Assembly: GCA_019828565.1 (NCBI GenBank)
Contig: JAHDYR010000005.1
Coordinates: 1,315,937-1,379,936, forward strand
DNA: 64,000 nucleotides
Direction: 5' to 3'
Source of the DNA: Carpediemonas membranifera BICM
Taxonomy: Eukaryota; Protista; Fornicata
The notes under the pieces are model-generated. The model was not told where the DNA came from. It saw nothing but the letters and a program-made list of their open reading frames with translations, and ran no database searches. Both the position numbers and the translations under genes were made by a program. Below, one piece after another: positions 1 to 64,000 of this stretch (positions are counted from its first letter, which is position 1; the number at the start of each line of letters is the position of its first letter).

Positions 1-439
1 GGCTTTGCCCTTTGCCCTTGTCCTTCTCCTCGGTGTCAATGGCCTCAATAATGGTCTTTACGCGCCTTTGCGCTTCTCCTGGCTATACACATATCAGCCT
101 GGTTGTCGTCAACCCACTTCTGCCAGCGCGCCGGGCTTCTTGGAACTTCTTGGTCCGGCGAGTGCCATAAACTGCTTCTTCAACTTATCCTGGAGCTCCT
201 CCTTCTCGTCCTTCGTGAGGCGGAATTTCGTAGTGATATGGTTCAGGTTGATTCCTATATAAGCATTGCTATGACTACAAACGCTTCCTGATCACTAGAT
301 CGAGCAGTTTCCGTTCATCCAGCAAAACCGCGCGAAGAACAGCACATTTGGCATGATTGGTGGTTGCCTTGGTGTATGCAGCCAATATCGCATCGTACTG
401 TTCCTTGCTAGCGCTCTCAATCCACTTTAGCAAGTCCAT
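1..439 (-). CDS. Cargo gene 'A' paralog (coiled-coil protein; other copies end in an OTU domain), partial, intron 255-282
   Basis: Exon 1 MDLLKWIE..AKCAVLRAVLL resembles the ORFs at 56339 and 62383. A 28-nt phase-1 GT..AG intron sits at the same position. Exon 2 RINLNHITTKFRLTKDEKEELQDKLKKQFMA aligns with the paralog. Confidence 0.7.
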
Positions 440-767
440 TTTCGGCACTATCAGCAAGAGAGCATAAAAAAATGGACATAGAGTGCCAAAAGTAATAAAC
501 TGAAACCATCCTCACGGCAACTATGTACCTAGGCGGCCTCAGCACCTCCAATACCTTCCGTATGTGCTTTTTTGTCCGTCCCTACTTCGTCCCACGAACC
601 AGAAAAAAGCGCAAAGAGAGGGCCCTTTGAATAATTCTATAACGGCAGCAGAGCATAAAACACGGTTCGAAAGGGCTGATTTTATGCTCTCTTGCCGTTA
701 GTTCAAGCCGAGGCACGCTTCGGGCGAGCTCCGGCCAAGGGGTCCAGGAGTCAGCTTTTGGGGGAAG

Positions 768-2176
768 GTCTGTGGTGCTATAACGTACCTCGGGACGCAC
801 TGTGGAGGCCCCTAGAGTACTCGGTCATGACATGTCAGACCAAGGGTCCCTCAAATCTGGCCCCATTCAGGATGCTCCCCCTAAATGTTCCGTTGCAAGC
901 GTCTGACGGGCGTTCTCTGGATACCGACCAAGATGGAGGTCACGTGGATCAACGGACGATAATTACGGTATTCTGGCCATGCCTGGTACTCTCAAATCAT
1001 CTATACTGATCAGTGCTCCATTTATAGTTCATATTGTTTGGTCCTGATGGACTTATAGTTGTTGATGTTGTTTAGGGATAATTGTTGCTTTAATGATGCT
1101 CTGCGCTCGCTTACTGATGTTTCTTAGTGATATGTGCATGCCTACTACGTTAAAGCTGCCAGTATTCTTTCTATTCTTAAGTTCGCCATTTCAGTCTCGT
1201 TGCGAGCATAAAGTGCACATTGTGAAAGGAAATTGGGTGGTTATATAATGGATACAGGGCAGGAAAAGGTACACGAATGCCGTCCTGAGGTTTGGCATGG
1301 GATACTGATCTCATACGTCAAAAATGGGCGGTGGTATTCGAATTTCAGAATTTCGGCATGTCCGAATTCCGAGGCAAGCGGGTAGGGTGTACAAAACCTG
1401 GCCTGGGTCCCTACTGGAGCTAATAGATAACAGTATCACCGTGTATTCGGTTTTCAGAAATATAACTTGTGTTGGTATTGCAATTTCAGAATTACTTCCA
1501 GTACCGGAGATTGTCTTAGAATTTGGATGTTCATGACTACTTTAAAATTTTAAAAAGTTCCCATGAACCCACTCCAGCTCAGGATTGCGGATCTGAGCCA
1601 AGTTTAGGTCGAATCCAAGTATTTGATAATTTTGTATGTACGAAATTCTGAAATTGCAATACCAACAGAAAAACTCGTGTTATGGAGGTTCTAGCTGCAA
1701 ATAACGACGATATTGTTAAGCGCTGGTCTGATAGAGGTTCAGTGAAGACGCGTAGTGTGTACAAGAAGCACCTGGAGGACGTTTTGGCCAGCATTTGCCA
1801 GGAAACAGGCGCTGAAATGCAGAAGGGCATCGAGATTGTCCGAAGCGACAACGTTACGACTTATTTGGCGCATTATTTCGCTACAAAGACGCCTGCTATG
1901 GCTAAGAGGATCGTTTCGGCTGTTCAGTCTTTCCGGAACTTCGACTTGCCACATCCCGCGAAGCCGTTGTCCTGGAAAGAGGAGGAAGAGGTGTCGCCTG
2001 CATCAGTTGAGAGTCTCCCCAGCCCGTATGGCGCCATTGCCATTCTGCTCAACCAGACGGGCTGGGAGTATTCGTATCTCCAAGGTAATCTCCCCGATGC
2101 GATAGACCTTACCTCGTGCCCGAGCTGGATGGGCTTTGGCACGCTCAAATCGGGATTCCCGCAGGCCAGTGCTGTA
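768..2176 (+). repeat. Near-identical direct copy of 62593-64000; diverged inverted copy at ~54300-56060
   Basis: Direct sequence comparison; matching ORF translations at 1324/63149 and 1755/63579. Confidence 0.95.
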
Positions 2177-2543
2177 TCGGAGGCGCTCAAGGTTCAGGGG
2201 TTGACGGTTCGCATGCTTCGCTTTTGCGCAGCGGATCGACGTGTCCACCGATAGGATGCAGTCTATCGGCACGCTAGAGCGCCGCGGCAGACCGCAGGAG
2301 AAGCCTCAGAAGGTCGTTAAGGACAAGCGCATCAGCCTGACCGATGAGCAGTTCAGGCACCAGTTGGCGTCCAGTCACTTAACGACCACGCGGCGCCCAA
2401 CGATCCTCGATCTCAACCCGGAGATCCGAAGCTCTGCCGACCTGGTGCCGCCGATGCTCGATGACTGGCTTTACAACAGGCTCAAGGCCAGAATGATCGA
2501 GCTTCACGATACTAAGAAGAAAGAGAGGCAAAGCGAGGGCTGA
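1682..2543 (+). CDS. Cargo gene 'B': degenerate tyrosine-recombinase-fold protein (frameshift ~2225)
   Basis: ORFs 1682-2254 and 2241-2543 together equal the uninterrupted paralog 53955-55157. Has core-binding-like motifs (TRSVY..L; RIVSAVQSFRNF), box I-like AIAILLNQTGWEYS and box II-like LTVRMLR. Confidence 0.5.
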
Positions 2544-3033
2544 CAAGGAGGCGGAGTTCGGCTCGCCGACTCGCGAGACAGAGATGCCAGAGGGCGAGAG
2601 AGGGCGATACTGACGAGGAGGCGGTGTCCGACGAGCCAGCTTACCAGGCAGAGTGGATGCACTACGAGGTGCCAGCTCGCGAGGAGAGCGCCTTTGGCGA
2701 GGAGGTGGACTTATGCAAGAGTGCCGATGAGGAACCAAAGATCGACCACGACGAGCATGGCGGGGAGGTGGCGGGCAGAGATGGTGATGGGGAGATTCAA
2801 GAGAACGTGATTGATGAGGAGCGCTCAGAGAGCGATACTGCCGACAGTATCGTCTTTTCCTTCATCTGACATTGTAAAGAGGAAGAGTTTATGATTGGAG
2901 CATAGCTGATGTCCATAAACACCATTCATAAGCCAGTCCTGTCTTGTTTTCCACTGCTACTTCTCTCGTTGCGACGCACAGCTAGCTGTCGCGAAATGCA
3001 CTTTAAGACCAATTTTCACACAGCTACCTGTGC

Positions 3034-4331
3034 ATGGTGTTCGAGCTAGATAGCGACAAGCTGGAGCGACTTACTTCCTTACCTGGTAATAGTAGACAAT
3101 ATCTGCACGACTTTGAACCTGAAAAGCTGCAGGTCGTGATCAAAGTTGATGAGCATTATGATATGGAGGTTCCCACCCTGCTAGCGCTCAAGGACAGTCC
3201 GCATGTCCTCCCCTGTCGTCGATACAGGTTTTGTCGACCGTGATCCAGCCTTCATGGCTCCTTTGGTCAACTGTACCCCCTTCGCTGACATCTGCCAGGC
3301 TCACTCCAGCGTGCAGTTCCGCTATGTTTCGCATCTGCTGCAGGCAGTATGCTACATGCATGACCACGGGGTTGTCCATTGCGATATTAAGCCAGACAAC
3401 TTCCTCTTCAGCAAGAGTCAGAAGGGATACCTCATTGATTTTTGGGTCTGCAATGAGGAAGCCGGCTAATGGCGACGACAGGTGGGCCATACAACTGAGA
3501 TTTGTATCCGAGTATCGCGGCACCCATGGATATTTGCCCCCAGAGCTGTTCTACGAGTACCTTGTCTCGCGCTCAGTGATTACTGCTGCACGCGACACCT
3601 CCAAGCTCGCGCGCATGACGGCAGGGGCTCTTTCCGTCACTTCTTATGTCGTGACACCTGCATCGGACATTTACTCTTGCGGTGTAGTCATTTTGATGCT
3701 CTTTTACGGTCTCCCCAAGTCCCCCTTTGCCGCGAAGGTGACTGACATGGGTGCAAACATGGCGCAGATCGACAACAAGAAGAAGAAGAAGATGCTGAAG
3801 CTTGGTAGCTTGCTGAACTGGTGCCAATTCTATGGTGGGCAGTTGCAGTTGTCACCTCAGGCACAGACACATTTCAAAGATTGCCTCGAGTGTGTCAACG
3901 TGAACTCTGAGCTCCCGATTCGCGGCACCACGCCACCTACTTGTCTCAGCCTGTACGACCTGGCAATGCAGATGCTCCACTTCGACCCTGCGAAGCGTCC
4001 CACTGCTGCCGAATGTCTTGACAAGCTCAAGGTCATCATGCGCGTGCATGAATGCGTCGCCAAGCCGAGTCCGCTTCTGTTAGATGATACAGAAGAGGTC
4101 ACCCTGTCTGCAGCTCAGCGAAAGAGACTGACCGACTGCTGTCAGCGAGGGTTTGAGGGTCAAGTCTTCTATCGGCGCTGCATAGTGTGTGGTAGAGACC
4201 TTCATGGACGCGAGAACGTCAGCTGTGACACATGCCACAAGGGATACAGGCAGGTGAGCACCAATAAGTGCGCAAAAGGTGTGCGCGGAAGACTGCACAG
4301 GCAGTTTATTGCGATGATTGAGCGGACGTAA
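3034..4331 (+). CDS. Ser/Thr protein kinase with C-terminal Cys4 motif; two frameshifts (~3208, ~3440) in homopolymers
   Basis: VVIK, HCDIKPDNFL, DF(G), GTHGYLPPE, SDIYSCGVV and DPAKRPTA motifs lie across three overlapping ORFs. Confidence 0.85.
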
Positions 4332-4794
4332 AGAGATTGATACTTTCGGTGATGCAGGAATGAGATCAATGCTGCTGACAGGTCTCGAGATGGCAGAGGT
4401 GCTGGAGAAGAGAGAGCAGAAAAGGCATCAGAAGTAAATGAACGAGGTAAATTCCAGTTCGCCGGAGATGATATCCTTCCTCGTACGCGGCATGTGTCTT
4501 GGGTCTTAAGTTCGCCATTTTAATCTCGTTGCGAGCATAAAATGCACACTTGTGCATTCGAGTACAATGACGAAATCCCTCAATATGCTACCAGCAGTGC
4601 ATTTAATAACCAATATCAACGCCGAGACGCGTGTAGTTCGGAGCCATGTAGTTGTTTGCGCTCGTCTGTCCCCCTATTACCGAAACTGGTGCTGTACTCT
4701 AGAAAATCACTAACAACATCAACTCCTTTTCTCCGCAATGCAGATGAGAATGCCTATTCTCGCGATCTATAACTACCAATCATGTTTTCATTCT

Positions 4795-7350
4795 TTACTC
4801 ATACTTGCCACAGATGCACACATCCAGTGAGATCTCTCCTTCCTCATGGACATCGATGTCTAACCATTGCCCGTCAAACACGAGCCCTACCTGCCTCAAC
4901 ACCTTCTTCCATAGACCATCCACTTGACCTTCAAACAGAGGTAACAGTTTCTGACAGTCTCCCTCGTCCAATGTTCCAGTGCCCTCGCTCCGAATACGGA
5001 TCCAGTGTTTGGCGTCCTTGCAGCAGCGATGAACGCGCATTGTCTTCAGACGTATTTGGTGGGGAACGTCTGTTGACTGTCGCCCATACGAGACGACGCC
5101 ACGGAGGAATCGGTAAAAACAACTCGACCTGCTCCTTCAATATCGTTCTCTCAAGGACCATCTGGTTGCGCCTTAAGTGTACTCTACTTTCCTGATTGCC
5201 AATAAAGTCGCGCTCGAATGACTCCTCAATAATCCGGCCAAGTGGGACTCGGATTTTTGACTGAATCTCCGGCAACACAGCAACTCGCGCTAAGCCATGA
5301 AGTGTGTCGATGGAGGGAGCCTTCTTGGCTACCTTAGACGGCGGCCGGATTGGAATAGACTCCGACACGGTGCTGGTCGTGCTCAGACACATTGTCAGTG
5401 AAAAGAGGTGAACAAGCAACGCTGTCAGTCGATGCCAGGTGATAATGTCATCTGTGGCCTCCTCGTGAGAGTAATAATGCTCTTGCAGGTAGGCAACGAG
5501 TCTGAAAAGTGGCTGAACGGGGGAGGGAATGCCATGTAGAGACCGTTTCCAATTGACGCGATCATCTTCCTCCCCTTCACTTGCTCATTACAGCCAGTCG
5601 TGCGACTGGGAGGTTCAAACTTAGCCAGCCTGGCGAGGTCAGCGTTTCTGGCCTTCTTGGTCTTGATTTCCTCCGGGGTAGAGTCTGGGTCGACCTCAAT
5701 TGGCTTGAACATCCGACAAATGTTGTGTATCAAGGAGACGAAGTCATGACTGAGGTGCATGATCGGCGGGACAAGGAAGATTTTGCCCCTATCGAGAGTT
5801 GGGTCATCCGAGTTCTCGAATAGGCTGGGCATGATGCACTTATTCTTCTTGTTGTAGAACGACCCCCACTTCTTCTCTCTATCCAGGACTGTCTTGTCCT
5901 CAACAGACATCTTCTTCGCATACATCACGTCTGCAATCGTGTTTCGTGGGGTGAGACCGAATGGGCTCCAGGCCTTGTTGTCAGCATGTACCGAGCTGAA
6001 TGGAGAGGGATAGCTGCCGCCAATCAAGGTTCCACAGACTTTTGACATCGCTGGGTGGTCTGCGATGAACATAACGCGAGTGACACGGCACAGGAGACCG
6101 GTATTTCTCACCTCAAGTGACTCGCGATGGGTACTCTCGACTGAGCGCTCGATGAAGTCGAAGAATTCTCCAATGCGCTTCTCTGGTCCGTTGTACTCGA
6201 GTATGCGGAAGGGTGGTGTTCCGCCTGACGGGAAGACTTTGCCGGAGACATCGATAAACCGAACCTTCACAGATGTAGTCAACCCTCGCCATCCATCGAC
6301 CCAGACGAGAAGATCAAGCGGCACTGTCTGAGTCTCTTCAGCTTGAGTCTGCGCTGTCAACTGCTTGCCCACGTTCTTACGAGCAGCCCTTGACCTCTCG
6401 AGATCGATAGGCGAAGCCACCGCCTGGCGATAGTACCGCATGAGGTCAAACTCAGCGTGTTGCACATGGGAATACCTGCCGCTAGACTGGAGACGCGGGT
6501 TGAGACCGGCTCTCTTCATCACGTCATTATGTGCAGTTCGCTTCATTGCCGATTCGTAGAAGATGCACACCGTCGTACCTCTGAGCACTTCAGTGTTATA
6601 GTCGTCGCCGTCGAATGTAGCGTTGACTTGTTCGAGGTCTGCGTCGACGTGGGTAATCAGGTCGAGGTCATACTCGCGGTGATCCTTGTCCGTCCTCTTT
6701 GCTCGTGTCTCTTGAGTGATCGCCATGGGTATGTAGCCCTTTAGGGCCTTTTTCAAGTTCCTATGCGACTTGACAATGGTCTCAACGTCTGCGATGTTCC
6801 GAATGCTGCACTGAAGCGACTTGACTTGGTTTGTGACCTGATTGATGTTGATAATGTCAAGGTTGAGTCTCTGTGCAAGGGCTTGCATGATGTGAATCTC
6901 GTCATTGACTGCATTCACGCCGATCGTGATGGCCCTGAGCTCGTTGGACACCTGCAGAAGACGTTCAGTGTCAGCAATACGCTTACGTAGACGAGCATTC
7001 TCTGCCTCGAGGCCGAAGCTATCAGAATGCAGAACATATGCACCAACGTAAAGGTGACTGGGACCAGAGCGGTGTGCCTTCTTCTCCTTTGAGATGCTAG
7101 TGGATGATGGCGCTGGGTAGAGATTGCTAGAAATAGCCTCACGCGATACAGCGCCGATATTGATTAGTTCCTGCGCGATGCGGGCTAGCTCGAGCCTTTG
7201 CTGGTGTTTGGAGGTATCAAATCCGTTAATACGGCGATCCACTGCGTCAATCGAGAGCCAGACGCTGCAAAGGATGGTATTGATGTCATCAGTGCCCTCC
7301 GGAGCATAGATAGATCCGTTAGACAGTTTCCACTTCAGTTGAAGCGCCAT
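4795..7350 (-). CDS. RAG1/Transib-like DDE transposase, copy 1 (frameshifts ~5520, ~5060)
   Basis: WVDG, IADH, PPIMHL and LH..VLPEIQSKIRVPLGRIIEESFE motifs occur in RAG1/Transib order. Collinear with 45261-47627 across ORFs 5425-7350, 4931-5419 and 4795-5040. Confidence 0.7.
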
Positions 7351-7415
7351 CTGTCAGTCGCTCTTTCAAGAATTCTAAAGATCCTAAAAATGCGTGACTT
7401 CGAGAAGATCATCTA

Positions 7416-8651
7416 ATGCCAGCCACGGAACTAGAGATGAAGCGTGGAAATGAAGGAACTACTCCGGACACCCGAGAGACGAACTCTCAGAAACGCAAGC
7501 CGATGGTCAGGTGGAATGACGCCGCAAAGAGCGAATGCAGGTCGGCTCTCATGATTGGTATGCTCAAGGCATTCTTTTGCATCACCGTTGATGTGTTTGG
7601 AACGGATATGACTGGTCTATCTGTCCGTAAGGTGGCGAATGCCTACAATCACATCATCTCGGTGTACTTGCAGCCCTGCCACCCTGATCCGACATTCTTT
7701 GATGGTATCAAGTCCCTCACGGCTGTATCGCAGGGTAGGCTTGTCATTGGGCATGTTAAGGAGTGGGCAACCCAGTCTTGCCACTGCAACATCGGCATTT
7801 CTGATCAGGCTCCTTCGAGAGTGTTTCATAACCTTTCTCGGGCCCCCAACCCGGTGCGATCGGAGCTTCTGACCGCGATGAAGAAGATTTTCACGAGAGT
7901 TGGCCTGGACGTCCCCCAGAATTTTGATTCGCGTCCTCTGTCCCTTAATCTGGTGGACCTTTCGGCACCCGACATATTTACTGGTCGGACGAAGACGTTT
8001 TTCAAGACAGCAGAAATCCCCCATTCCGTGCCGCAAGTGAAGCAGGAGGTGGAGGTTGACCCCGTTCGACCCTCTGAGTCTATCTCTAAGCGTAACGTCA
8101 TGCTACTCGATGACGTCCATCGCATGACACAGCGCATGTCGGAAGATCTCTCTCAGCTCAAAGAACGGCCGGTAACCGCTGATTCAGACTCTGACGATGA
8201 TGGAGAGAACCTCCTTGACTTGCAGAAGAGGATGCTTGCCTTCTGTTGCGGCCATTGCCACAGCTTGGACTGGGTTGGCAATCTCAACACGTCAAAGTTT
8301 GTCTCATGTGGAGAGTGCGGCAGGAACTTTCATGACAATTCCGTTTGCGTGCCTGCTCGTCCGGAGAAATGTTCAAAGACTGCCAACTGGACGAAAGAAG
8401 CCAACAGAAAGAAGTCCTCGTGGAAGTTCACATGCCAGGCTTGTGTCCAGGAGAAGACTTGTTTCGCATGCCAGAAGAACGCCTCGGTATATCATTGTCG
8501 GATGTGTGGGCACTGGTTCTGTGGTAACAAGGGCTGTATGGGCACCACTGCCGTGAAGGTCGTCATTGACGGCGTGAATATTCCCAAGATCCGTCTTTGT
8601 GACGATTGCCTTGAGAACTTCAAGTCGGTGGTTCAACAGTCGGAGCAGTAA
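7416..8651 (+). CDS. PHD/Cys-rich zinc-finger protein
   Basis: CCGHC..SCGECGRNFH..C..FTCQAC (C4HC3) plus a second Cys cluster, after the acidic patch DSDSDDDGE. Divergent from the transposase, 65 bp apart. Confidence 0.7.
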   Translation: MPATELEMKRGNEGTTPDTRETNSQKRKPMVRWNDAAKSECRSALMIGMLKAFFCITVDVFGTDMTGLSVRKVANAYNHIISVYLQPCHPDPTFFDGIKSLTAVSQGRLVIGHVKEWATQSCHCNIGISDQAPSRVFHNLSRAPNPVRSELLTAMKKIFTRVGLDVPQNFDSRPLSLNLVDLSAPDIFTGRTKTFFKTAEIPHSVPQVKQEVEVDPVRPSESISKRNVMLLDDVHRMTQRMSEDLSQLKERPVTADSDSDDDGENLLDLQKRMLAFCCGHCHSLDWVGNLNTSKFVSCGECGRNFHDNSVCVPARPEKCSKTANWTKEANRKKSSWKFTCQACVQEKTCFACQKNASVYHCRMCGHWFCGNKGCMGTTAVKVVIDGVNIPKIRLCDDCLENFKSVVQQSEQ

Positions 8652-9866
8652 AGATACAATTGAATCTTTTCAAACATATTTTCATGAAGATAGATCCAAT
8701 GAAACTATGTACCATGAGCCCGATTGCTCAGTGATTATGTGATAATCCTGTGTGACCCAGGACAGCGTGCTCCTGGAATCAACAGGGCACAAAAACACCC
8801 TGCGTATTCCGGTAGCACACCGTTCTGACTCATACGTCCGTCTCTGGTTGTCGTATACAGGTCTATTTACGTGTTTGGCGATGGCGCTCCCTTAAATCTG
8901 CTTGAACGGCGTGTCGTGGCTGTCAGTATGCTGCAAATGTCGCAGCGAGAAAGGAGTCACCAATCGCGTTCAGCTTTCTTGTTTCTCGCCTGATACTGCT
9001 CGTAATATCGTTCAAGCGTGAATCTATGAAGTAATGGGACTGAATGGCCTCTATTGCGTCAATTTCTTGCGTAATCGTTGTTGAATGGCCTAGAATAGAT
9101 GTTGCAGCTGCTTCCAGCTCCTGTTGCATGCTAAATGCTGTGTTTTGGACAATTGGTCGTGTTCAGGCAGATTTTTTTCGTGCAAAGTGCAGGCTAATAC
9201 GCGCCCTTAAACTGTGGGATCAGCCGCTGGGTAAATATACTGAGAAAAAACCATATAGCTGAGTTCACTGTCTTGTGCTGAATACGGTGGCGCCATTTAT
9301 TTCTCTGAATCGCTAAGTTTTGTCAGCGTTGACCGCGCACGACCGGTCGTCCTTACGCGATGACACCCAGCCCATCTTGTAGGTCGGGTGGCCATACCTC
9401 GCGGCCTTGCTTGCTTTTCTTTGACGAGCAATATTCCCTGAGTAATAGCCTCTCCTTTTCTTCAATTCGACTCTAGCCAAGTCAAAAACAAGAAATCGAC
9501 CATATCTCAAAATCTAACAGGTAGATTCACTCTGAAAGTGATTATGCGCATATGTACCTCCTTTCAACTACTCACATAATCACTATCGTAGTGAATCTAC
9601 CTGTTAGATTTTCTGTTATTGTCCATTTTATCGTTTCGTCTTAACCTGCACGGCGAAATGCTCAAACCAGGCAAGGAGTCAGAGCCAGAGCTTCTTTCCA
9701 TGCTCTAAGTACATCATATGGACTCTCAAGAAGACCTTCGTTTATCTCTAAATAGCTTAAATTTAATGAATACTTCATTTCTGAGCAAGAAATTGTAGAT
9801 TATCTAGCGTTTTGAGGTCGAAGATAATCTAGGGTTTAGCAAAGATAATCTAGGGATGTTGACAGC

Positions 9867-15013: not shown

Positions 15014-15030
15014 CTACCAAGCTCCCATCG

Positions 15031-47627: not shown

Positions 47628-47775
47628 TATTTCTATCCAGTCCAGAGGGTGAGAACGAAGTAAAAGTTTGATTGACACGAAAATGCACGTATCCCGAACC
47701 ACGAAGATGTAGTATGGTGACCTTTTAACGCACAGAGTAGACTGAAACTTCCCACTTGGCGCAGCTGGCCACAAA

Positions 47776-48410: not shown

Positions 48411-48413
48411 ATA

Positions 48414-51967: not shown

Positions 51968-52283
51968 GCAGACAATTCTGGTACCTTTTCTGGAACAAAT
52001 GGTTCCAGAATTGGTTCCAGAATGCCAGAAAAAATGGCATTTGCAAGAAAAACTAAACGCGTTCAAACAATTTAGCGACGCCTTGCCACGGGGTGTAAAG
52101 CAATATGCAACTAATACTGGGCCCAAGGAACGTTGATACGTACTGCTCAAGTCTTGAAAGTGAACCTTCAATATCAAACTAGTGCTAAAGCAACGGTATT
52201 GTGCGTCATTTCCTCCAAAACGCCCCCTTTACGTGATATTGTACGCTCAATATTTGATGAGTTCAAAATGGTGTGACAGTACG

Positions 52284-53015: not shown

Positions 53016-53954
53016 ATGAATGTATATCTGACTGTCTGGGCATCAGCGCTGTCGTTCAGGCCAATCCACGTTTGTGGATCCGTGCAGTTTATGGTTTCTC
53101 GGCCTCCATGCAACAGCCCTGCCTCACCATCGGTATCGACGTGTACTGCGGCAAGAACAGCTTCACCCAGGGCGAGGATAACGTCCGCCAGGGTCAGCGC
53201 CGCTCCGTCATCGGCATGTCCGCCTGGTACGTCGAAGAGCAGGGCCACCTTGAGACCGTCAACCGTCCCGTCGAGACCATCGCCCGCTTGGCGAGTAAGC
53301 GCTACACTACCGCTTCACCAGCCCTCCAAGGCAGCGTTCTGGACCTGCGTCATCTCCGGCGAACTGGAATGATCCAAAGTAACGGTGTAGTGTTCTTTCT
53401 GGCAGCTAATTGTGCATAAGCGAATGCTTTGTGGTCATTTATTGCTCTTTGGCGCAGCAACGCCCACAACTCTTTGGGATACTGTTCTTTTGGTGTTGAT
53501 GTTGTTATTGATGTTGATTTCTCCGCTTTTCGCTGCTTTGCGTTGTAATTGCAATGTTTTCTAGTACATTCCGCGCATCAGATCATTGCTACAACCTGAA
53601 CTCGCCATTTTGGCGTTGCAATGAAACTATCCCCTAAAGTGCACACTAAATGAAATCAGAACAATTTGGGGTCAGCTGCGCCAAGTCGATGGCTTAGTCA
53701 GTGTTTGAGTCATTCCCACGACATATTTACTTCGTTCATTTACTTCTGATGCTTTTCCTGCTCTCTCTTCTCCATCACGTCGTCATACTCGGCCCTCGTC
53801 AGCCTCACAGTTGTCATTCCGGCATCACGGATGTGCTGAAAGGCCTCATCGGGCAGCTTCGGCATCCCGTCCTCGCTGTCGCTGCTGCTGCCCAAGTCTG
53901 ACTCGCTCTCGTGATAGCGGCGAAGGCGAATGCGTCTGCTGGGCACCCTGGTCT

Positions 53955-55157
53955 TCATAGAGTCATAGAGCGGAGCGAGCCCACTTCCATTGGCCCCGCT
54001 ACGGACACCCTCATCGGTATCTCTCTCAGACATATCACACTCAACCTGTTGTGACTGAACAAATGACAGGTTGTCGACGAGGCTATCCTCGGCATCGCTG
54101 TCTGAACTCTCCTCATCCTCCCACTCTCCTTCCAGCATCTCCAACCCGGCTGTCTCGTCAAACTCGCCCTCCACTGCGGTCTCCGGCATCTCTGCCTCGC
54201 CAGCTGTCTCGTCAAACAGCGCCTCATCGTCAGACTCACCCTCCCCGTGTCGCCCCCCTCGGGCTTACGCTGGTCGTGGAGCTGGACCATCCTCATCCTG
54301 AGCTTGTTGTAAAGCCAGTTATCGAGCGTCGGCGGCACCAGGTCGGCAGAGCTTCGGATCTCCGGGTTGAGATCGAGGATCGTTGGGCGCCGCGTGGTCG
54401 TTAAGTGACTGGACGCCAACTGGTGCCTGAACTGCTCATCGGTCAGGCTGATGCGCTTGTCCTTAATGACCTTCTGAGGCTTCTCCTGCGGTCTGCCGCG
54501 GCGCTCTAGCGTGCCGATAGACTGCATCCTATCGGTGGACACGTCGATCCGCTGCGACAAGCGAAGCATGCGAACCGTCAACCCCTGAACCTTGAGCGCC
54601 TCCGATACAGCACTGGCCTGCGGGAATCCCGATTTGAGCGTGCCAAAGCCCATCCAGCTCGGGCACGAGGTAAGGTCTATCGCATCGGGGAGATTACCTT
54701 GGAGATACGAATACTTCCAGCCCGTCTGGTTGAGCAGAATGGCAATGGCGCCATACGGGCTGGGGAGACTCTCAACTGATGCAGGCGACACCTCTTCCTC
54801 CTCTTTCCAGGACAACGGCTTCGCGGGGTGTGGCAAGTCGAAGTTCCGGAAAGACTGAACAGCCGAAACGATCTTCTTCTGCGTCCCCAGAGGCTTCTCA
54901 GCGAGGTACCGGCGCAAATGGGTTACCAGCTCGTCACTACGGACAATCTCGATGCCCTTCTGGATATCTGTGGCGGTTTTCTGACAAATTCTGGCCAAAA
55001 CGTCTTTCAGAAGCTTGTTGTAGTTCGTACGCGATTTGGTTGGAACATTCCTCAACCAACGCTTCATGATATCTTCGTCTATTGCCGCTACAGCCTCCAT
55101 GGGATGAGTTTTTGCTGCTTCAATTTGGATTGCTATTTCAGAATTTCGACCATACAA
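53955..55157 (-). CDS. Cargo gene B, degenerate YR-fold protein
   Basis: 400-aa ORF; SRTNYNKLL..LRRYL..TQKKIVSAVQSF; TGWKYS; LTVRMLR. An acidic tail may continue to 53740. Confidence 0.55.
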   Translation of the reverse strand: MYGRNSEIAIQIEAAKTHPMEAVAAIDEDIMKRWLRNVPTKSRTNYNKLLKDVLARICQKTATDIQKGIEIVRSDELVTHLRRYLAEKPLGTQKKIVSAVQSFRNFDLPHPAKPLSWKEEEEVSPASVESLPSPYGAIAILLNQTGWKYSYLQGNLPDAIDLTSCPSWMGFGTLKSGFPQASAVSEALKVQGLTVRMLRLSQRIDVSTDRMQSIGTLERRGRPQEKPQKVIKDKRISLTDEQFRHQLASSHLTTTRRPTILDLNPEIRSSADLVPPTLDNWLYNKLRMRMVQLHDQRKPEGGDTGRVSLTMRRCLTRQLARQRCRRPQWRASLTRQPGWRCWKESGRMRRVQTAMPRIASSTTCHLFSHNRLSVICLREIPMRVSVAGPMEVGSLRSMTL

Positions 55158-56338
55158 AATTCTAAAGTATTGGGAATTGACCCAAACTGAGCTCAGATAC
55201 GTGATCTGGGGCCTGAGTGGGTGAATGGGGACCTTTCATTTTTAAAAGTGTTGTTACACTCCCAGATTTAATGATAATCTCCGGTACTGGAAGTAATTCT
55301 GAAATGGCGATCCAAATGCAATTATTATTCTGAAAACCGAATCCATGGTGCTGCCATTCTCTATTCGCTCTAATAGGTACCCAGGCCAGGTTTTGTACAC
55401 CCTACCCGCTTGCCTCGGAATTCGGACATGCCGAAATTCTGAAATTCGAATACCACCGCCCATTTTTGACGTATGAGATCAGTATCCCATGCCAAACCTC
55501 AGGACGGCATTCGTGTACCTTGTCCTGCCATATATCCATTAGATAACCACCCACTTTCCTTTCACAATGTGCACTTTATGCTCGCAACGAGACTGAAATG
55601 AGGATCTGAAGAATAGAAAGAATACTGGCGGATTTGAAGATGCAGACACATGAATATCACTAAGAAACATCAGTTGGCGGGCGCAGAGCATCAGTCAAGC
55701 ACCAATTATCTCTAAACAACATCAAGTACCATAAGTCCATCAGGACCATACGATATGAACAATAAATGAACCACAGAGCAGTATAGATGATTTGAGAGTA
55801 CCAGGCATGGCCAGAATACCGCAATACTCGTCCGTTGATCCACGTGACCTCCATCTTGGTCGGTATCCAGAGAACGCCCGTCAGACGCTTGCAACGGAAC
55901 ATTTAGGGGTGCATCCTGAATGGGGCCAGATTTGAGGGACCCTTGGTCTGACATGCCATGACCGAGCACTCTAGGGGCCTCCACAGTGCGTCCCGAGGTA
56001 CGTTAGAGCACCACAGACCTTCCCCCAAAAGCTGACTCCTGGACCCCTTGGCCGGAGCTCGCCGAAACGTGAAAATCGGCGATGATTTCTCCGTATAACG
56101 TCATAGGGGGTTATATGGGGCTCTTTTCAGCCGCAGATAACGTCTCTTGGCCATATTAAATTTGCGAAAGGCCCTGGCTCGCTGGCCGGACGATTTAATC
56201 AGCATCGGCGAGAATGGACGTGTGGGTAGGGCTAGGGGTGTGATGACGGCTGGTGGTAGTCACGGTGTGAGTGCTTTCAAGCCGCAGGCGATATACATAA
56301 ACTTTTAGTAACCATTTAACGTCTCTTGGCGATATACG

Positions 56339-58057
56339 ATGCTAGACTTGTTCACTTGGCTGGAAGAAGCCACTGAGTTCGATAAGAAGGAGCTAATGAC
56401 CAAGATCAATGCAGCTGCAAGCGCTAAAGGCAAATGCGACGTCCTTCGCGCGCTTTTGCTGCCTAGGCGCGATTTACTCGCTACTGTGATCAAGGAACGT
56501 ACGTTACTGAGCGAAATTGTTTAAACAGGTGTTAATCTCAAGCGTATTGCCACGTTCTTCCGTCTCACGTGCCAGGAGACGGAAGATATGAAGAAGGACC
56601 TTAAGGCGCAGTTTATGGCGACGATGAAATTGAATGAGGGTGAAAGGGTCACAGGGGAACACAAGAAAACACTGAAGCAGGTCCTCGGCGGGGATACCTT
56701 CACGCACCTGTACGACGGCGAGGTGGAGAGCGCGCGTATTCGGGTGAAGAAGAGCATTCGTGAGGCTAGAAAGAAGACAAACGCTAGGCTTGAGTGTGAA
56801 CTCGCGAAGGAGGAGGACGAGGACATCAGGGATTGTACTCGGGTTCAGATGATGAAGCTGGCCGATGAGGAAGACCGAAAGGAGTTGGAAAAGGAGATGG
56901 AATACACGCGCGAGTCCAAGTATGACGTGGTATGGGAGCGAGTGTACGATGAGATCTGCGGTACTCGTCGTGTGCGGGCCCGCAAGGATAACGCCCCCTG
57001 TCCCGGCGAGGATCACGCCGACCACGTGCTTCAGCGCTATCTCTGGGCCGACCAGATCGATACTCAGGCGCTTACTGGCGAGAAGACGTTGACCACGAGA
57101 CTCCCTGCTGAAGCTCGAGTCGTACGTCGCGTGACAGCCAGTCTGATCTCTGCCCAGAAGACGGAGATCCAATCTCTCAAGGAGCAGGTCGAGCGGCTGA
57201 CGAAGCAGGTGACCGACGAGAGAAGAGACCACTTTCTTGAGTGCAGGCGTATCCATCATGAGCATGACGTTGGGTACCTTGCTTCCTGCGATGTTTCGTT
57301 CGCCGCCAGCCCCATGCCGCCACAGTCTGGCACGCTCTCCAGGACTTCCTGCCCCCGACGCACTACGGACGAGCCCGAGGCCTCCATGTCTGTGAAGCGC
57401 AAGGCCCTCTTCATCACGCCCGAGAAGGCCAGGCCTGAGGACTCAGAGGAGGAGACAGAGGAGGAGCAGGAGGAGGCGAAGGAGAAGAGGGGTGAGGCAG
57501 AAGAGGAGACGGTGAACACATGCGACGCCTGCATCCAGACTGAGCCGGAGACTCAGACTCGCATCGCCTCTGAGGCCGCGGTGCAGACGTGCATCAACGT
57601 GGAGGCTCTCACGACTAACTGTACCGCGATTCATGTCAAGAGTGACGGCAACTGCGTTGCATATTGTCTCCAAGCCATTGAGTTGGGTGGCAGAGTTGAT
57701 GGCGACTTCGAAAGGTGGCAGCGTGGCCTCTGCCAGTCAGTGAAGGCCAAGTACTGGTCTAAGAAGAATGTCACGGAGCGTAGCCTGACAGATCCGGACT
57801 CCGGCTACTATAACTCGAACGCCATCCGAGTCTGGGCGAGGAAGCAGAAGCGGAACATCCTTGTTGTCCAGTCATACGACGGATACAACGGCATGCAAGG
57901 CATCTCCGCCATCTTATACCTGTTTGATGGCACCACCATGCTTGCACCCGATGCAGACTTGTGGGGGTTGACAGATAATTTCGCTATTGTCATCGAAGGC
58001 GATCCGGCTCACGCCACGCTGTACCAGAAGAAGTGCGAGGTCGTTGAGATTGAATAA
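56339..58057 (+). CDS. Cargo gene A: coiled-coil protein with C-terminal OTU-like cysteine protease; intron 56499-56528
   Basis: A 30-nt GTACGT..AAACAG intron with an in-frame stop; IHVKSDGNCVAYC...GDPAHATLY. Confidence 0.78.
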
Positions 58058-59139
58058 AGATTTGGATATGCCTTTGTAGTGCGTTCGACTGTGTACGTTT
58101 AGGAGAAGGCTGAGACGGAGAAGAAGGAGGACAAGGAGGTGGAGACAGAGGAGAAGAAGGGTAAGTAGGCAGACGAGGAGGAGCCTGACTCGGAAGGATA
58201 AGGACAGCGGCATGTCTGTCTACCTCACAGATGAGGCATTTGAGTGGGTCAAGCGTCGCGATCCGACAGGCAAGAGAGCGAGACAGGAATAAATGAATGT
58301 ATATCTGACTGTCTGGGCATCAGCGCTGTCGTTCAGGCCAATCCACGTTTGTGGATCCGTGCAGTTTATGGTTTCTCGGCCTCCATGCTACAGCCCTGCC
58401 TCACCATCGGTATCGACGTGTACTGCGGCAAGAACAGCTTCACCCAGGGCGAGGATAACGTCCGCCAGGGTCAGCGCTCCGTCATCGGCATGTCCGCCTG
58501 GTACGTCGAAGAGCAGGGCCACCTTGAGACCGTCAACCGTCCCGTCGAGACCATCGCCCGCTTGGCGAGTAAGCGCTACACTACCGCTTCACCAGCCCTC
58601 CAAGGCAGCGTTCTGGACCTGCGTCATCTCCGGCGAACTGGAATGATCCAAAGTAACGGTGTAGTGTTCTTTCTGGCAGCTAATTGTGCATAAGCGAATG
58701 CTTTGTGGTCATTTATTGCTCTTTGGCGCAGCAACGCCCACAATTCTTTGGGATACTGTTCTTTTGGTGTTGATGTTGTTATTGATGTTGATTTCTCCGC
58801 TTTTCGCTGCTTTGCGTTGTAATTGCAATGTTTTCTAGTACGTTCCGCGCATCAGATCATTGCTACAACCTGAACTCGCCATTTTGGCGTTGCAATGAAA
58901 CTATCCCCTAAAGTGCACACTAAATGAAATCAGAACAATTCGGGGCAAGTGGCGGCATTCATGCAGCTGAATATGTGCTTAGCTTGCCTTACTAGTCACC
59001 CTGATATGGCTGATGTGACGGGCCTGTTGATGAAAGCCACATGGCCGAACACTTTAGGGCAGTACAGGACAAGACAGCAACGTAAATTTACGAGTGAGGA
59101 CGCTGGAGAGCAGAGCGCCTGGGAAACAGCGCTGGGGAC

Positions 59140-60172
59140 AGGAGCCCCGGAGGATAGAGCCCGGGAGAAGAGCCCGGGGGATAGAGCGGCGGGAGAGCGC
59201 CCGGGGGAGAAGAACTCGGGAGAGAGAAGCCCGGGAGAAGAGCCCTGGAGAGAGAAGCCCGGGAGAGCGCCCGGGGGAGAAGAGCCCTGGAGAGAGAAGC
59301 CCGGGAGAGCGCCCGGGAGAGAGGAGCCCGGGAGAGAGAAGCCCGGGAGAGCGCCCGGGAGAGAGGAGCCCGGGAGAGAGAAGCCTGGGAGAGCGCCCGG
59401 GGCAATTCAGGGCCCCGAAAACGCCAGCACCAGCGCAAGTAAGCTATTTTATTGCAAACCGCTCTACTTGCGCTGGTACTTCAGCGTTTTCGCGGCCCTT
59501 TGCCCATCATTCGTCGTCTGAATTTTTTCGTGCAGAATTCTGACGAGTGCCGCCTGGCAGAGCCTGAGCATCTGAGCTTAGTCCCTGTGGCACCACTCGT
59601 CTGGCCCAGCTCCCGGGCATGCTCACGAAAATACAGGTGCAGATTTGGGAGCAGAATGATCGACGAACCCCGAAAACGCCATAACCGGCACCAGTGAGCG
59701 CATCTTCGTTGATGAAGCTCATTGGTGTTGGTATTATGGTGTTTTCGGGGTTCTAATACTGTACTCCTCATCCCTGGCGCCTCATCCCTGGCGCCTCATC
59801 CCTGGCGCCTCATCCTGGCGCCTCATCCCTGGCGTCTCATCCCTGGCGCCTCATCTCTGGCGCCTCATCCTGGCGCCTCATCCCTGGCGCCTCATCTCTG
59901 GCGCCTCATCCTGGCGCCTCATCCCTGGCGTCTCATCCCTGGCGCCTCATCTCTGGCGCCTCATCCTGGCGCCTCATCCCTGGCGCCTCATCTCTGGCGC
60001 CTCATCCTGGCGCCTCATCCCTGGCGCCTCATCCCTGGCGCCTCATCCCTGGCGCCTCATCCCTGGCGCCCTCATCCTGGCGCCTCATCCCTGGCGCCTC
60101 ATCTCTGGCGCCTCATCCCTGGCGCCTCATCCCTGGCGCCTCATCCCTGGCGCCTCATCCCTGGCGCCGTCA
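59140..60172. repeat. Inverted, shorter copies of the two minisatellites (59140-59402; 59766-60172)
   Basis: Same repeat units, reverse-complemented. Confidence 0.93.
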
Positions 60173-61488
60173 TCACTGGCGCCCACACAGCACCCCTACG
60201 CCAGCGCCATCAATCCCCCAACGGCACAGTAAACAGAAAATGCTCTTTATGCTCTTACACGATGGCGTTTGGAGACGAAAACGAACACCCATGGTACCTG
60301 CAGGTAAGGTAAGGTAAGGTAATTTCCGGTGATCGCGTTCGTTGCAATTAATCATCATACCAGACAGCGCTCCTGGTATCAACAGGTGCATCATGCCCTG
60401 CGTATTCTAGCAGCACGCGGTCTCTCCGCATCACTACGTTGTTTGCTTGTCTGATATTAACAGCAGAATGACACCAGAAAATTTATCAAACATGATGTGG
60501 ACGGGGAGTGCTTCAATATTTGTCTCTTGATACGGTTCATGTTTGCTAGTTGCCTCACTGAGAACGTAGGATTGCCTTCATCAGGTATATGGACGCAACA
60601 TCAAGGTATTCCTTCGCGATATCGTCTGCAAAGAGGTAGTATTCCTCTATTTGAACCAAATCTTTGATTCTTATGCGCATCGTCTCTAATTCAGTGACGA
60701 ATTCGTGTCTTCTCATGTTTGTGTACTTTATGCACAAACATGAACCTCCATTGATTTGTGGCAGTGAAGCAATTCTGGCACTATTAAGCGCCACGCTACG
60801 AGTGAGTATGGCATGTTTCAACACCTAGCCGTCGTCACAGTTTAGTCAGTTTTGACTCGAACCGAACCAGTGCCTATAACACCATCAATACTGAAGTTCA
60901 GATCCTTTTGAAGTGATAAACTAGTAGAATAGAAGGATGAATAACACTGTGCTCAGTTTTAGCTCCGTTGGACATGAAACATATTTTTCTATCGATTTGC
61001 GTTTGCTTGCGAAAGTTTGTGCTATTTTCTCCAGATAAAGGCGTGCGCAAGGAAATCTGGAGGCTAGCGCTGTTATAATGAATGTTAAACTGTTACGTAA
61101 CGGTGTCGGTATCCAACGCGCATCCCCCGTTCTTGAGCAGAAGCAAACTTTTTGGCAGTATTTCCCGAAAACCTCAACTTTGAGCAAGAATAATTTTTGG
61201 GGGAGCTGTCACAGACTGAGAGAGAGTTGGAGCTGGCTTAAGCACACCTCGGGCAAGCCTCTGTTAGTTTTTGGTCGAGCTCTGCTGAAAAGTGAGTGAG
61301 TTCATGAGAGCAGTACGTATCAACGTTCCTTGGGCCCAGTATTAGTTGCATATTGCTTTACATCCCATGGCAAGGCGTCGCTAAATTGTTTGAACGCGTT
61401 TAGTTTTTCTTGCAAATGCCATTTTTTCTGGCATTCTGGAACCAATTCTGGAACCATTTGTTCCAGAAAAGGTACCAGAATTGACTGC

Positions 61489-62383
61489 ATGGTATCGCGT
61501 CGGGGACAGGAAGTCCTGGAGACTGTGCCAGACTGTGGCGGGATGGGGCTGCATGGGAGTGATGCATCCATGGACTTGTCAGCGTCATAGGCTGCCTCTC
61601 GCTCAGCCTGCTGCTGCAGAAGGCGTCGATGCAGCGTGATGACTTCCTCACTCTTTGCCGTCAAGCTCTTCCTCAACTGCTTGACTCTCTTCTTGTATCC
61701 TCGAACAATTTTGTGATAGGAATCGATGATAGCGCCAGTACCTGGGGGGAGCAGGGGCGTACCTTCTCCCGCGGGAGTCTCCAACCATTCCAGGGCGATG
61801 ATGTACTCTTCGAAGTACGAGCGGCAGGAGTGCTTCATGTAAGCAAGGTCTGCCTCCTTGCTGCGCACCCTGGCAACCATTGCTGTGACATGGTCGCGCA
61901 CAAGCGCGTTGGTGGATGTCGCGTTGCGCCACGCCCGAACCTTGACACTCAGCGCCTCTTTTTCGATACGCGCGCCCTCATTCTCCTTGGCATACTCAGC
62001 CCTCTTGGAGTTCTTGAAGGCTGTGACAGCGGCCGACTCAAACGCCTTCATCTCCTTCTCCGTGAAGGTTGCCTCGATGTTCTCGTTCGAGGTCTTATCC
62101 TGCACCTGCTGAGACAGCAATGCCTCGAGTTCTGCCTTCTTCTCGCCCTGAATCTCGAAATATGAGCACAGGTGGTTGAAGTTGATCCCTATATAAACAT
62201 TTGCACCAATTACGTACCGTTCTTGACGACTATATCGAAGATATCGTTCTCGTCGAGCAATTTGTCCCGAAGAACGGCACTCTTCGCCTTGTTTGTCTTC
62301 TTCTCCTTGAATTCGGTGATAACGGCCTCAATCACATCATCTGAGGTGCTCTCGATCCACTCGTGAAGGAATTCGAACGTCAT
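61489..62383 (-). pseudogene. 5' half of gene A copy, intron 62189-62217
   Basis: 29-nt phase-1 intron; ends PQSGTVSRTSCPRRDTM at the TIR. Confidence 0.8.
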
Positions 62384-63505
62384 TCTTCTCTTCGTTATAT
62401 CCCAATAATGGACATATAACAGAGATGAGAAAATTGCCAGTAACCGTAGGCAACGGGGTGTCGGAAACGTTATACCATACAAACGGGGGATATAATCGCT
62501 CCGAAAACACCCATTATGTGGACTGAATGGCGATATAACGTATGAGGAGTGATCCGGCGAGCTTTCGGGCGGTGCAGGCTAAGACACACCAAGTCTGTGG
62601 TGCTATAACGTACCTCGGGACGCACTGTGGAGGCCCCTAGAGTACTCGGTCATGGCATGTCAGACCAAGGGTCCCTCAAATCTGGCCCCATTCAGGATGC
62701 TCCCCCTAAATGTTCCGTTGCAAGCGTCTGACGGGCGTTCTCTGGATACCGACCAAGATGGAGGTCACGTGGATCAACGGACGAGTATTGCGGTATTCTG
62801 GCCATGCCTGGTACTCTCAAATCATCTATACTGCTCTGTGGTTCATTTATAGTTCATATCGTATGGTCCTGGTGGACTTATAGTTGTTGATGTTGTTTAG
62901 GGATAATTGTTGCTTTAATGATGCTCTGCGCCCGCATACTGATGTTTCTTAGTGTTGTACACATGCCTACTACGTTAAAGCCGCCAGTATTCTTTCTATT
63001 CTTAAGTTCGCCATTTCAGTCTCGTTGCGAGCATAAAGTGCACATTGTGAAAGGAAAGTGGGTGGTTATCTAATGGATACAGGGCAGGAAAAGGTACACG
63101 AATGCCGTCCTGAGGTTTGGCATGGGATACTGATCTCATACGTCAAAAATGGGCGGTGGTATTCGAATTTCAGAATTTCGACATGTCCGAATTCCGAGGC
63201 AAGCGGGTAGGGTTTACAAAACCTGGCCTGGGTCCCTACTGGAGCTAATAGATAACAGTATCACCGTGTATTCGGTTTTCAGAAATATAACTTGTGTTGG
63301 TATTGCAATTTCAGAATTACTTCCAGTACCGGAGATTGTCTTAGAATTTGGATGTTCATGACTACTTTAAAATTTTAAAAAGTTCCCATGAACCCACTCC
63401 AGCTCAGGATTGCGGATCTGAGCCAAGTTTAGGTCGAATCCAAGTATTTGATAATTTTGTATGTACGAAATTCTGAAATTGCAATACCAACAGAAAACTC
63501 GTGTT

Positions 63506-64000
63506 ATGGAGGTTCTAGCTGCAAATAACGACGATATTGTTAAGCGCTGGTCTGATAGAGTTTCAGTGAAGACGCGTAGTGTGTACAAGAAGCACCTGGA
63601 GGACGTTTTGGCCAGCATTTGCCAGGAAACAGGCGCTGAAATGCAGAAGGGCATCGAGATTGTCCGAAGCGACAACGTTACGACTTATTTGGCGCATTAT
63701 TTCGCTACAAAGACGCCTGCTATGGCTAAGAGGATCGTTTCGGCTGTTCAGTCTTTCCGGAACTTCGACTTGCCACACCCCGCGAAGCCGTTGTCCTGGA
63801 AAGAGGAGGAAGAGGTGTCGTCTGCATCAGTTGAGAGTCTCCCCAGCCCGTATGGCGCCATTGCCATTCTGCTCAACCAGACGGGCTGGGAGTATTCGTA
63901 TCTCCAAGGTAATCTCCCCGATGCGATAGACCTTACCTCGTGCCCGAGCTGGATGGGCTTTGGCACGCTCAAATCGGGATTCCCGCAGGCCAGTGCTGTA
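63506..64000 (+). CDS. Cargo gene B copy, partial
   Basis: Near-identical to 1682-2176. Confidence 0.6.
   Translation, partial: MEVLAANNDDIVKRWSDRVSVKTRSVYKKHLEDVLASICQETGAEMQKGIEIVRSDNVTTYLAHYFATKTPAMAKRIVSAVQSFRNFDLPHPAKPLSWKEEEEVSSASVESLPSPYGAIAILLNQTGWEYSYLQGNLPDAIDLTSCPSWMGFGTLKSGFPQASAV

Follow-up and report, generated by a model that had tools for sequence, protein, structure and literature searches.

A 64,000-nt stretch of the 24.2-Mb genome of the protist Carpediemonas membranifera (C6:1315937-1379936, hereafter the window; the organism is given by an exact match to the protein J8273_4482) is a nest of mobile elements, in which we found five cut-and-paste transposons, A to E, with E nested inside D. 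In our assessment these are probably DNA transposons that are moved by a DDE transposase with the fold of RAG1, that have CATRCWGY ends and duplicate 2 bp of their target, and that lie in or beside the supergroup formed by the CACTA/Mirage/Chapaev (CMC) lineages together with Transib ('CMCT'). The evidence comes from the ends of the elements, the duplications that flank them, the corresponding empty sites, the identity of copies, the RAG1-like fold of the modelled transposase and its conserved acidic residues. It includes the features by which DDE cut-and-paste transposons are recognised, i.e., terminal inverted repeats (TIRs), a duplication of fixed length measured against empty sites, and a transposase with an RNase H fold and acidic residues.

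Positions are those of the window; the 20 kb on either side of it were also examined, and positions below 1 or above 64,000 lie in these flanks. Pfam searches of the window identified several Gypsy elements (protease, reverse transcriptase, RNase H, integrase and chromodomain) and DIRS-like elements (reverse transcriptase and tyrosine recombinase).

Ends, duplications and empty sites

The TIRs of the five elements range from 22 to about 188 bp. The elements are listed here with the dinucleotides that flank them on the left and on the right.

Element A, -9446 to 9869 (right half in the window, 1 to 9869): 19,316 bp, TIR of about 80 bp, flanks TC and TA.
Element B, 28531 to 32290: 3,760 bp, TIR of about 49 bp, flanks CG and CG, non-autonomous.
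Duplication of B: CG at 28529-28530 and 32291-32292.
Element C, 33177 to 37421: 4,245 bp, TIR of about 59 bp, flanks GA and GA, non-autonomous.
Duplication of C: GA at 33175-33176 and 37422-37423.
Element D, 43721 to 71536 (in the window up to 64000): 27,816 bp, or 18.3 kb without E, TIR of 22 bp, flanks AG and AG.
Element E, 51965 to 61491: 9,527 bp, TIR of about 188 bp, flanks GT and GT, non-autonomous, nested in D.
Duplication of E: GT at 51963-51964 and 61492-61493.

The elements start with 5'-CATRCWGY and end with its reverse complement. A reads CATACTGTCAAC.. on the left and ..GTTGACAGCATG on the right, B reads CATACTGTT..AACAGTATG, C reads CATGCAGTC..GACTGCATG and D reads CATGCTGTCTGG..CCAGACAGCATG; E belongs to the same family as C. 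An initial annotation of this DNA had proposed eight junctions of the form CAT/RCWGWY, all of which were found where it had placed them. Six of them do pair as TIRs, at lengths that become about 49 bp (B), about 59 bp (C) and about 188 bp (E) instead of the proposed 46, 53 and about 181 bp once the CATR is counted. Partner ends had been predicted for the two unpaired ends, and both lie outside the window, at -9446 (A) and 71536 (D). The 9-mer CATRCWGWY alone is barely enriched (17 observed against 9.3 expected, a count that one of 100 shuffles reaches). A 31-mer of the A-type end occurs at 61 genomic places and a 29-mer of the C/E-type end at 32, with none for either reversed-pattern control, so the long TIR pairs are not due to chance.

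CATR/YATG is the outermost tetranucleotide of the TIR of the element and not its target. The initial annotation had taken CATG to be the site of insertion, to be left as a single copy upon excision. The first of these claims is refuted and the second is not confirmed by the empty sites, i.e., by the uninterrupted paralogues of the multicopy host retroelements: four independent empty sites (those of B, C, D and E) have no CATG, and filled and empty sites differ by the element plus 2 bp (CG, GA, AG and GT, respectively). At the site of B, nine DIRS paralogues read GAGAGCGACGTT and the window reads GAGAGCG/CATACTGTT...AACAGTATG/CGACGTT; at the site of C, the same nine paralogues read CTGAGAGCACA and the window reads CTGAGA/CATGCAGTC...GACTGCATG/GAGCACA. 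D is inserted in the reverse transcriptase/RNase H open reading frame (ORF) of a DIRS-like element. Excising it (43721-71536 and one AG) gives a 640-aa reverse transcriptase/RNase H ORF, whose alignment to a 67%-identical paralogue runs ungapped through the junction (NFSV/RVESDAS versus NCSVRVETDAS). With E and one GT taken out, D is exactly as long at this point as another copy of it, the C1 copy. It had also been claimed that excision restores interrupted reading frames. It does, and this has no power to discriminate, because the CATG-target and 2-bp models differ by 6 nt and the frame is kept under either.

Identical 2 bp stand outside CATR..YATG in seven of the nine complete Carpediemonas copies (CG, GA, AG, GT, CA, TC and AA), where the chance of a matching flanking dinucleotide is 1/16 per copy. 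An eighth pair, GC/GC, flanks an element in a second genome (GCA_002919055.1), and no sequence preference is visible among the eight duplications. All seven end types that we collected have the form CATR..YATG. A-family ends that are identical in sequence behind the fourth base can have either A or G at that base, which makes this variable base a property of the element and not of the target. Several putative pairs of A ends are mismatched at this base, as are the two ends of the window copy (CATA at -9446 and CATG at 9869).

The transposase and its fold

The initial annotation had described a long transposase-like ORF that reads inward from 1.2-2.5 kb inside the ends of A and D, and it is present in both.

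4948 to 7350, minus strand: A-family transposase gene, in frame segments 7335-5518, 5533-5114 and 5118-4948.
44911 to 47627, plus strand: D-family transposase, of 905 aa in the C1 copy and reduced in the window to a 758-aa ORF from 45351.
45984-45986 (D), 46227-46229 (D), 47064-47066 and 47073-47075 (E, in EEYFE): conserved acidic residues of the D transposase.

The A ORF (5425-7350, minus strand) and the D ORF (45261-47627, plus strand) are homologous (26% identity, E-value 1e-30), and the genome contains matches to the transposase at 57-71 loci at least, in several subfamilies. The expectation that transposase copies lie inside such ends was borne out: the gene is at a fixed distance from the end in every subfamily examined, e.g., at least a dozen A-family transposase genes have an A-type end about 2.5 kb upstream of their start. 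B, C and E have no transposase.

The frame of the A gene changes in overlaps near 5518-5533 and 5114-5118, owing to which its 641-aa ORF (5425-7350) does not include the C-terminal EExxE motif. Elsewhere in the genome there are relatives of full length (852 aa), and the window copy needs two frame changes to match them. In the window copy of D, a run of A at about 45191 is one base shorter than in the C1 copy, with the loss of the first 147 codons. The frameshifts are in or beside short single-base runs (45186-45191, A5; 5518-5533, G5/G3; 5114-5118, A5). In public reads, fragments were found only in four very small runs, with contigs that span 44.8-45.2 kb only and hold nothing that bears on expression, excision or the frameshifts.

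A profile search of 1.84 billion representative proteins returned only 17 at E-values of 1e-10 or below, and most of those looked up are from Carpediemonas. The 23 weaker, metagenomic matches, likewise without Pfam transposase domains, are homologous across the core (hhalign probability 99.8%). A word-based search for homologues gave a single relative from outside Carpediemonas. Numbered as in the 905-aa C1 copy, W357, D359, D374, E397, D440, PP539-540, H543, E718/E719, E722 and F725 are conserved in the close set of relatives as well as in the distant one. H543 is the sole conserved histidine, the H(2)H motif around it (PPVMHVSH) being confined to the close family. We considered E584 (in RTTGCNE) as the catalytic glutamate and dropped it: the motif is absent from the distant relatives, and the range aligned to RAG1 fits E719/E722.

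The fold of the transposase (L005:1150-3867) was modelled with AlphaFold (AF2) from an alignment of 34 sequences, giving a predicted local distance difference test (pLDDT) of 78 and a predicted template modelling (pTM) score of 0.75. All 43 Foldseek hits of this model in the PDB at E-values of 0.001 or below are RAG1, amphioxus BbRAGL or HzTransib (best E-value 1e-8), and the next protein is the P-element transposase at 0.027. With VIA-align, RAG1 reaches Z-scores of 13-13.9 over 437-452 residues, placing positions 114-760 of the model onto 460-1005 of RAG1, BbRAGL reaches 11.8-11.9 and ISCth4 7.6-8.3. An exhaustive scan of 48,161 chains likewise puts RAG1 first. In the ESM Atlas, the neighbours are a Transposase_21 (CACTA) cluster (406 aligned residues, template modelling (TM) score 0.56), Plavaka (TM 0.54) and a RAG1 fragment (TM 0.59). 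The nearest named clusters by protein language model are Plavaka, Transposase_21 and DUF1258, with scores of 0.83-0.88 that serve as leads only. A small additional alpha/beta domain (ferredoxin/ACT/RRM-like, about 202-307) precedes the RNase H domain of the model and has no counterpart in the RAG1 range.

In the model, D359 is on a strand, D440 comes directly after a strand, and a long insertion precedes the EExxE helix. The glutamate E962 of RAG1 is part of an E959-x-x-E962 pair, and the aligned ranges put its position at LLEEYFERDF, about 280 residues past D440. Given these ranges and the conservation, we take E719 or E722 as the third carboxylate, and catalysis would be by D359, D440 and E719-E722. 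A dimeric transposase would bind the CATRCWGY ends and free the element, probably, by analogy with RAG and Transib, by nicking and then forming a hairpin on the flanking DNA. The two 3'-OH ends would then be joined to the target strands at points 2 bp apart, producing the 2-bp duplication. In autonomous-type copies, of about 9-24 kb, the transposase stands 1-2.5 kb from one end and is accompanied by accessory genes; the short copies B, C and E would presumably be moved in trans.

Copies, cargo and host elements

Autonomous elements had been expected to measure from over 10 to over 20 kb; the autonomous-type copies found are of about 9-24 kb. Along with the window copy of D (18.3 kb), there are four other complete D-family copies with a transposase (8.6, 11.0, 17.5 and 18.4 kb), and the range of sizes, 8.6-18.4 kb, is accounted for by internal duplications and deletions of modules. 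The D copies are mosaics of modules of about 0.2-1.2 kb that occur in both orientations and in varying number (in the window, 47754-48411, 53029-53686 and 58306-58957). Putative pairs of A-type ends, defined by end coordinates only, are about 9-24 kb apart, and putative C/E-type pairs around a transposase about 20-21 kb. Counting their ends, one arrives at some 45 elements of 4-24 kb in the 24-Mb genome for the A and C/E families alone. Judging from transposase copies that are 100% identical at 2-3 loci per family, the family is recently active, and the 1,276 identical nt that C and E have in common argue for very recent movement. C contains a 14-bp minisatellite at 34484-35360. Minisatellites at 34484-35360, 35721-36410 and 59766-60183 are made of GGCGCCAGGGATGA (63 copies) and of a CCCGGGCTCTCT-type array; such 14-bp repeats take up much of C and return inverted in E.

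Related elements occur in other sources. In the second genome, contig PPCM01000946 carries an element of 11,629 bp, whose transposase shares no more than 30% identity with any Carpediemonas copy. It has CATACTG ends, a perfect TIR of at least 20 bp that starts with CATACTGCC.. (CATACTGCCCATGAGTGAAT...) and flanks GC/GC, and it lies inside the pol gene of a chromodomain Gypsy, where excision with removal of one GC restores a 939-aa ORF. Three further contigs of this genome (L056-L058) carry an identical 770-aa transposase. A metagenome contig (ENA ERZ23495434) encodes a 29%-identical transposase and reads ...GACAGCATG 790 bp behind its stop codon, and so shares its nine terminal bases with D. 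In Carpediemonas, a third subfamily ends in ...CAGAAAAAACAGCATG, and three of its copies diverge directly after this point (..ACAGCATG).

The initial annotation had listed a kinase, an OTU protein, a tyrosine recombinase-like protein and a 'module C' as cargo common to several elements. Module C, a shared DNA module encoding an ORF, stands; the kinase and recombinase-like assignments are weak, and OTU was not detected.

768 to 2509, plus strand: module C of A; also in D at 62593-64332 (97.6% identity) and, inverted, in E at 54274-56071 (88.6%).
3231 to 4331, plus strand: kinase-like cargo ORF, with a weak match to the C-lobe of protein kinases and an uncertain assignment.
7416 to 8651, plus strand: Cys/His-rich accessory ORF of 411 aa, head-to-head with the A transposase.

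B, C and the element of the second genome lack module C. The module C ORF was tried as a tyrosine recombinase and rejected, since it matches the integrase SAM-like clusters of the atlas at less than 0.9 and has no blastp similarity to the DIRS recombinases. The kinase-like ORF scores 27.4 bits with Pkinase, under the Pfam cut-off of 31.7, and has no PDB hit at E-values of 0.01 or below; a 428-aa ORF of D found nothing in the PDB either. No OTU domain was found by Pfam or by one Cys-box pattern over six frames, with several short ORFs outside these scans, and nothing informative came from searches with simple motifs of OTU, kinases and recombinases.

The best supported cargo, as far as sequence comparison can indicate, is a SET-domain-like gene. 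Three other D copies and both second-genome contigs carry it, A carries it just before the window, and the window copy of D has a remnant of it just past the window end (68198-68323). A profile built from five element-borne ORFs matches the SET domains of EHMT2 (G9a), EHMT1 and SUV39H2 (E-value 2e-6, about 130 residues); the single-sequence match to Pfam SET, at an E-value of 0.022, is under the cut-off. The accessory ORF at 7416-8651 has no Pfam hit, and its AF2 model was unusable (pLDDT 35). Its C-terminus is rich in Cys and His, with conserved CxxC pairs, and both the metagenome contig and the second genome encode homologues of it. Homologues of this ORF are thus beside RAG1-fold transposases in three sources (window 7416-8651, plus strand; L054:2623-3732, minus strand; L055:11805-13073, minus strand), head-to-head with the transposase in two of the three. 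One Carpediemonas homologue is labelled a FYVE-type zinc finger by its source. Acetyltransferase (GNAT) genes are present on two foreign contigs.

The retroelements that received the insertions are host DNA and not part of the transposons.

9870 to 13679, plus strand: host Gypsy, truncated about 16 codons into gag exactly at the right end of A.
37424 to 43720, plus strand: host DIRS-like retroelements (tyrosine recombinase and reverse transcriptase), which received B, C and D.

The partner end of D adjoins the rest of the DIRS reverse transcriptase/RNase H, as had been predicted. The corresponding prediction for A failed: the missing 5' half of the Gypsy is absent beside the partner end and beside every other A end of the genome. 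At the point of the right flank of A, seven Gypsy paralogues run on as ...CCCTACCT/TAATAAGG; Gypsy paralogues have CCTACCT/TAATAAGG where the flank of A has CATG/TAATAAGG. The left flank, about 1 kb long, has no second copy among the sequences compared and lies behind a different Gypsy (L013/L015, -15342 to -9447), and the reciprocal junction (5' part of the Gypsy, TA, left end of A) has no match in the genome with up to 3 mismatches. A is rearranged, with two flanks of different origin, which suggests ectopic recombination between A copies or an adjacent deletion.

Alternative readings and known systems

The CMCT clade comprises EnSpm/CACTA, Mirage, Chapaev, Transib, Plavaka, ESTA as well as Lanisha (Kojima 2025, PMC12730594). 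Its elements have 5'-CA..TG-3' termini and duplications of 2-5 bp, C(2)C and H(3-4)H zinc-ligand motifs are common to all the lineages listed, and the similarity of ESTA to RAG1 was reported via HHpred (PMC12730594). The range given for CMC is 2-4 bp, and Transib duplications can be of 5 bp, of 3 bp or TA, so that a 5-bp duplication is not an absolute feature of Transib (bioRxiv 10.64898/2026.08.26.747230). The initial annotation had placed the end and target chemistry of these elements outside what is known. It is not: CA..TG termini with 2-5 bp duplications are hallmarks of CMCT (PMC12730594). Its proposal of one new family with a RAG1/Transib-like transposase holds as regards a single group of large, cargo-bearing TIR transposons with a RAG1-like fold, and does not hold as regards a link to Transib in sequence. 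Literature searches found no published description of the Carpediemonas elements. The family thus apparently represents an undescribed lineage in or beside the CMCT supergroup.

Several observations weigh against the assignment of the elements to a RAG1-fold transposase of this supergroup. No Pfam transposase family matches even at an E-value of 10 (about 45 ORFs; 34 family members), PDB sequence searches with three profiles (A1, A2 and A3) gave nothing relevant, and no link to RAG1, Transib, CACTA or Plavaka emerges at the level of sequence. Neither the zinc ligands C(2)C and H(3-4)H nor any Cys pair is conserved. In the structural comparison, the P-element transposase also reaches Z-scores of 11.0-11.1 and HzTransib itself only 8.2-8.6, the third catalytic residue was deduced from aligned ranges and conservation, and fold matching cannot separate CMC from Transib. 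RAG1 would top the solved matches of any CMC-type enzyme, because the PDB holds no CMC structure. Both transposase genes of the window are frameshifted in homopolymer runs, which may be real damage or assembly error. Finally, two of the nine complete copies (A and the C1 copy of D) have no matching duplication.

The elements could be ordinary members of a named CMC lineage (Mirage-like with a duplication of 2 bp, or similar to Chapaev, Plavaka or ESTA), metamonad divergence being the reason for the silence of Pfam. The family would then be new, and the lineage not. We regard this as possible and, on the whole, doubtful. The CA..TG termini and the 2-bp duplication are within the CMC range (PMC12730594; bioRxiv 10.64898/2026.08.26.747230), the language-model neighbours are Plavaka, Transposase_21 and DUF1258 (0.83-0.88), and the Transposase_21 model of the atlas aligns over 406 residues (TM 0.56). 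However, none of the 34 family members matches Transposase_21 or Plavaka at an E-value of 10, C(2)C and H(3-4)H are absent, only 17 relatives at E-values of 1e-10 or below were found among 1.84 billion representative proteins, and the 23 weaker ones are also devoid of Pfam transposase domains. True Transib-superfamily elements with a shortened duplication are improbable, even though RAG1, BbRAGL and HzTransib are the only significant Foldseek hits in the PDB and Transib duplications are reported as variable (5 bp, 3 bp or TA; bioRxiv 10.64898/2026.08.26.747230). With VIA-align, HzTransib (8.2-8.6) scores under the P-element transposase (11), the neighbours in the atlas are mostly CMC-type, the zinc ligands are absent, and the termini have just CA in common with the CACAATG-type heptamer. 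No RAG1-family Pfam model matches at an E-value of 10 or below. What we found of Transib is the RAG1-like multi-domain fold, and not the 5-bp duplication, the CACAATG heptamer or similarity in sequence.

It is very improbable that the RAG1-fold ORF is cargo or a domesticated gene, with the elements moved by another enzyme, e.g., the recombinase-like product of module C. That A, D and E have module C in common and that the atlas gives a weak lead from it to integrase N-terminal domains would fit this view, but TIRs with a fixed-length duplication are the signature of DDE transposition, and in all the subfamilies examined, as in the second genome, the transposase lies at a fixed distance from the end. 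Module C, by contrast, is missing from B, C and the second-genome element, and has no significant similarity to DIRS recombinases. Insertion into the palindrome CATG, with CATG or its AT duplicated and the element starting at RCWGWY, is barely credible. It would explain the CAT before every end and the host frame kept in every excision model, yet the 6 nt by which the models differ explain the apparent restoration of the frame, and nine empty sites each for B (GAGAGCGACGTT) and C (CTGAGAGCACA) are without CATG. The paralogues of the D and E sites fit without a gap only under the 2-bp model, and the Gypsy paralogues have CCTACCT/TAATAAGG against CATG/TAATAAGG at the flank of A.

We therefore favour cut-and-paste elements moved by their own RAG1-fold transposase, in or beside CMCT. 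More tentatively, and as a proposal that may well prove too strong, they could form a branch of superfamily rank, i.e., a deep, zinc-free branch of RAG1-fold transposases beside CMC and Transib that includes the metagenomic relatives and has kept SET, Cys/His-rich and GNAT genes across distant hosts. If so, the cargo would be functional equipment of the transposon rather than a set of passengers. Antibody genes are assembled by RAG1, a descendant of Transib-like transposases, and how far its fold extends across eukaryotes and which of its features are essential are still being mapped. The lineage described here puts a recently active transposase modelled with this fold in a free-living metamonad, with a 2-bp integration stagger and without conserved zinc ligands, and in two genomes and on a metagenome contig the enzyme is tied to conserved cargo of chromatin type. 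Near-identical copies of the autonomous type and short ones, together with clean empty sites, make the design of assays straightforward, and repeat libraries can be annotated with the corrected ends, CATRCWGY plus 2 bp.

The elements resemble CMCT in their CA..TG termini, in a 2-bp duplication that falls inside the 2-5 bp range, in a similarity to RAG1 that is visible only by structure-level methods, and in being large elements with chromatin-related cargo (TET/JBP in the fungal CMCT lineages). They differ from CMCT in lacking conserved C(2)C and H(3-4)H motifs and any match to the Pfam models of its lineages, in their host, a metamonad protist, and in their cargo of SET-domain, Cys/His-rich and GNAT genes instead of TET/JBP. 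Mirage, a nematode CMC lineage, has a 2-bp duplication, and a nematode cluster of DUF1258, which we take to correspond to Mirage, is among the language-model neighbours of the transposase; however, there is no sequence match to DUF1258 at an E-value of 10 or below, and the size and cargo of the Carpediemonas elements are far larger. The P-element transposase is the second-best solved fold (Z 11, 327-339 residues aligned), with a shorter alignment than RAG1 and a Foldseek E-value of 0.027 against 1e-8; P elements make 8-bp duplications. In the group of RAG1, ProtoRAG (BbRAGL) and HzTransib, RAG1 is the best structural match, with a series of domains that aligns to the model (the RAG1 DNA-binding/dimerisation, pre-RNase H, RNase H, insertion and C-terminal domains), and the ExxE pair of the transposase (EYFE) lies about at the position of the catalytic E962 of RAG1. 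The transposase is set apart from this group by about 10% sequence identity, the absence of zinc ligands and the additional ferredoxin-like domain, and its elements by a 2-bp instead of a 5-bp duplication and by CATRCWGY termini that have only CA in common with CACAGTG/CACAATG.

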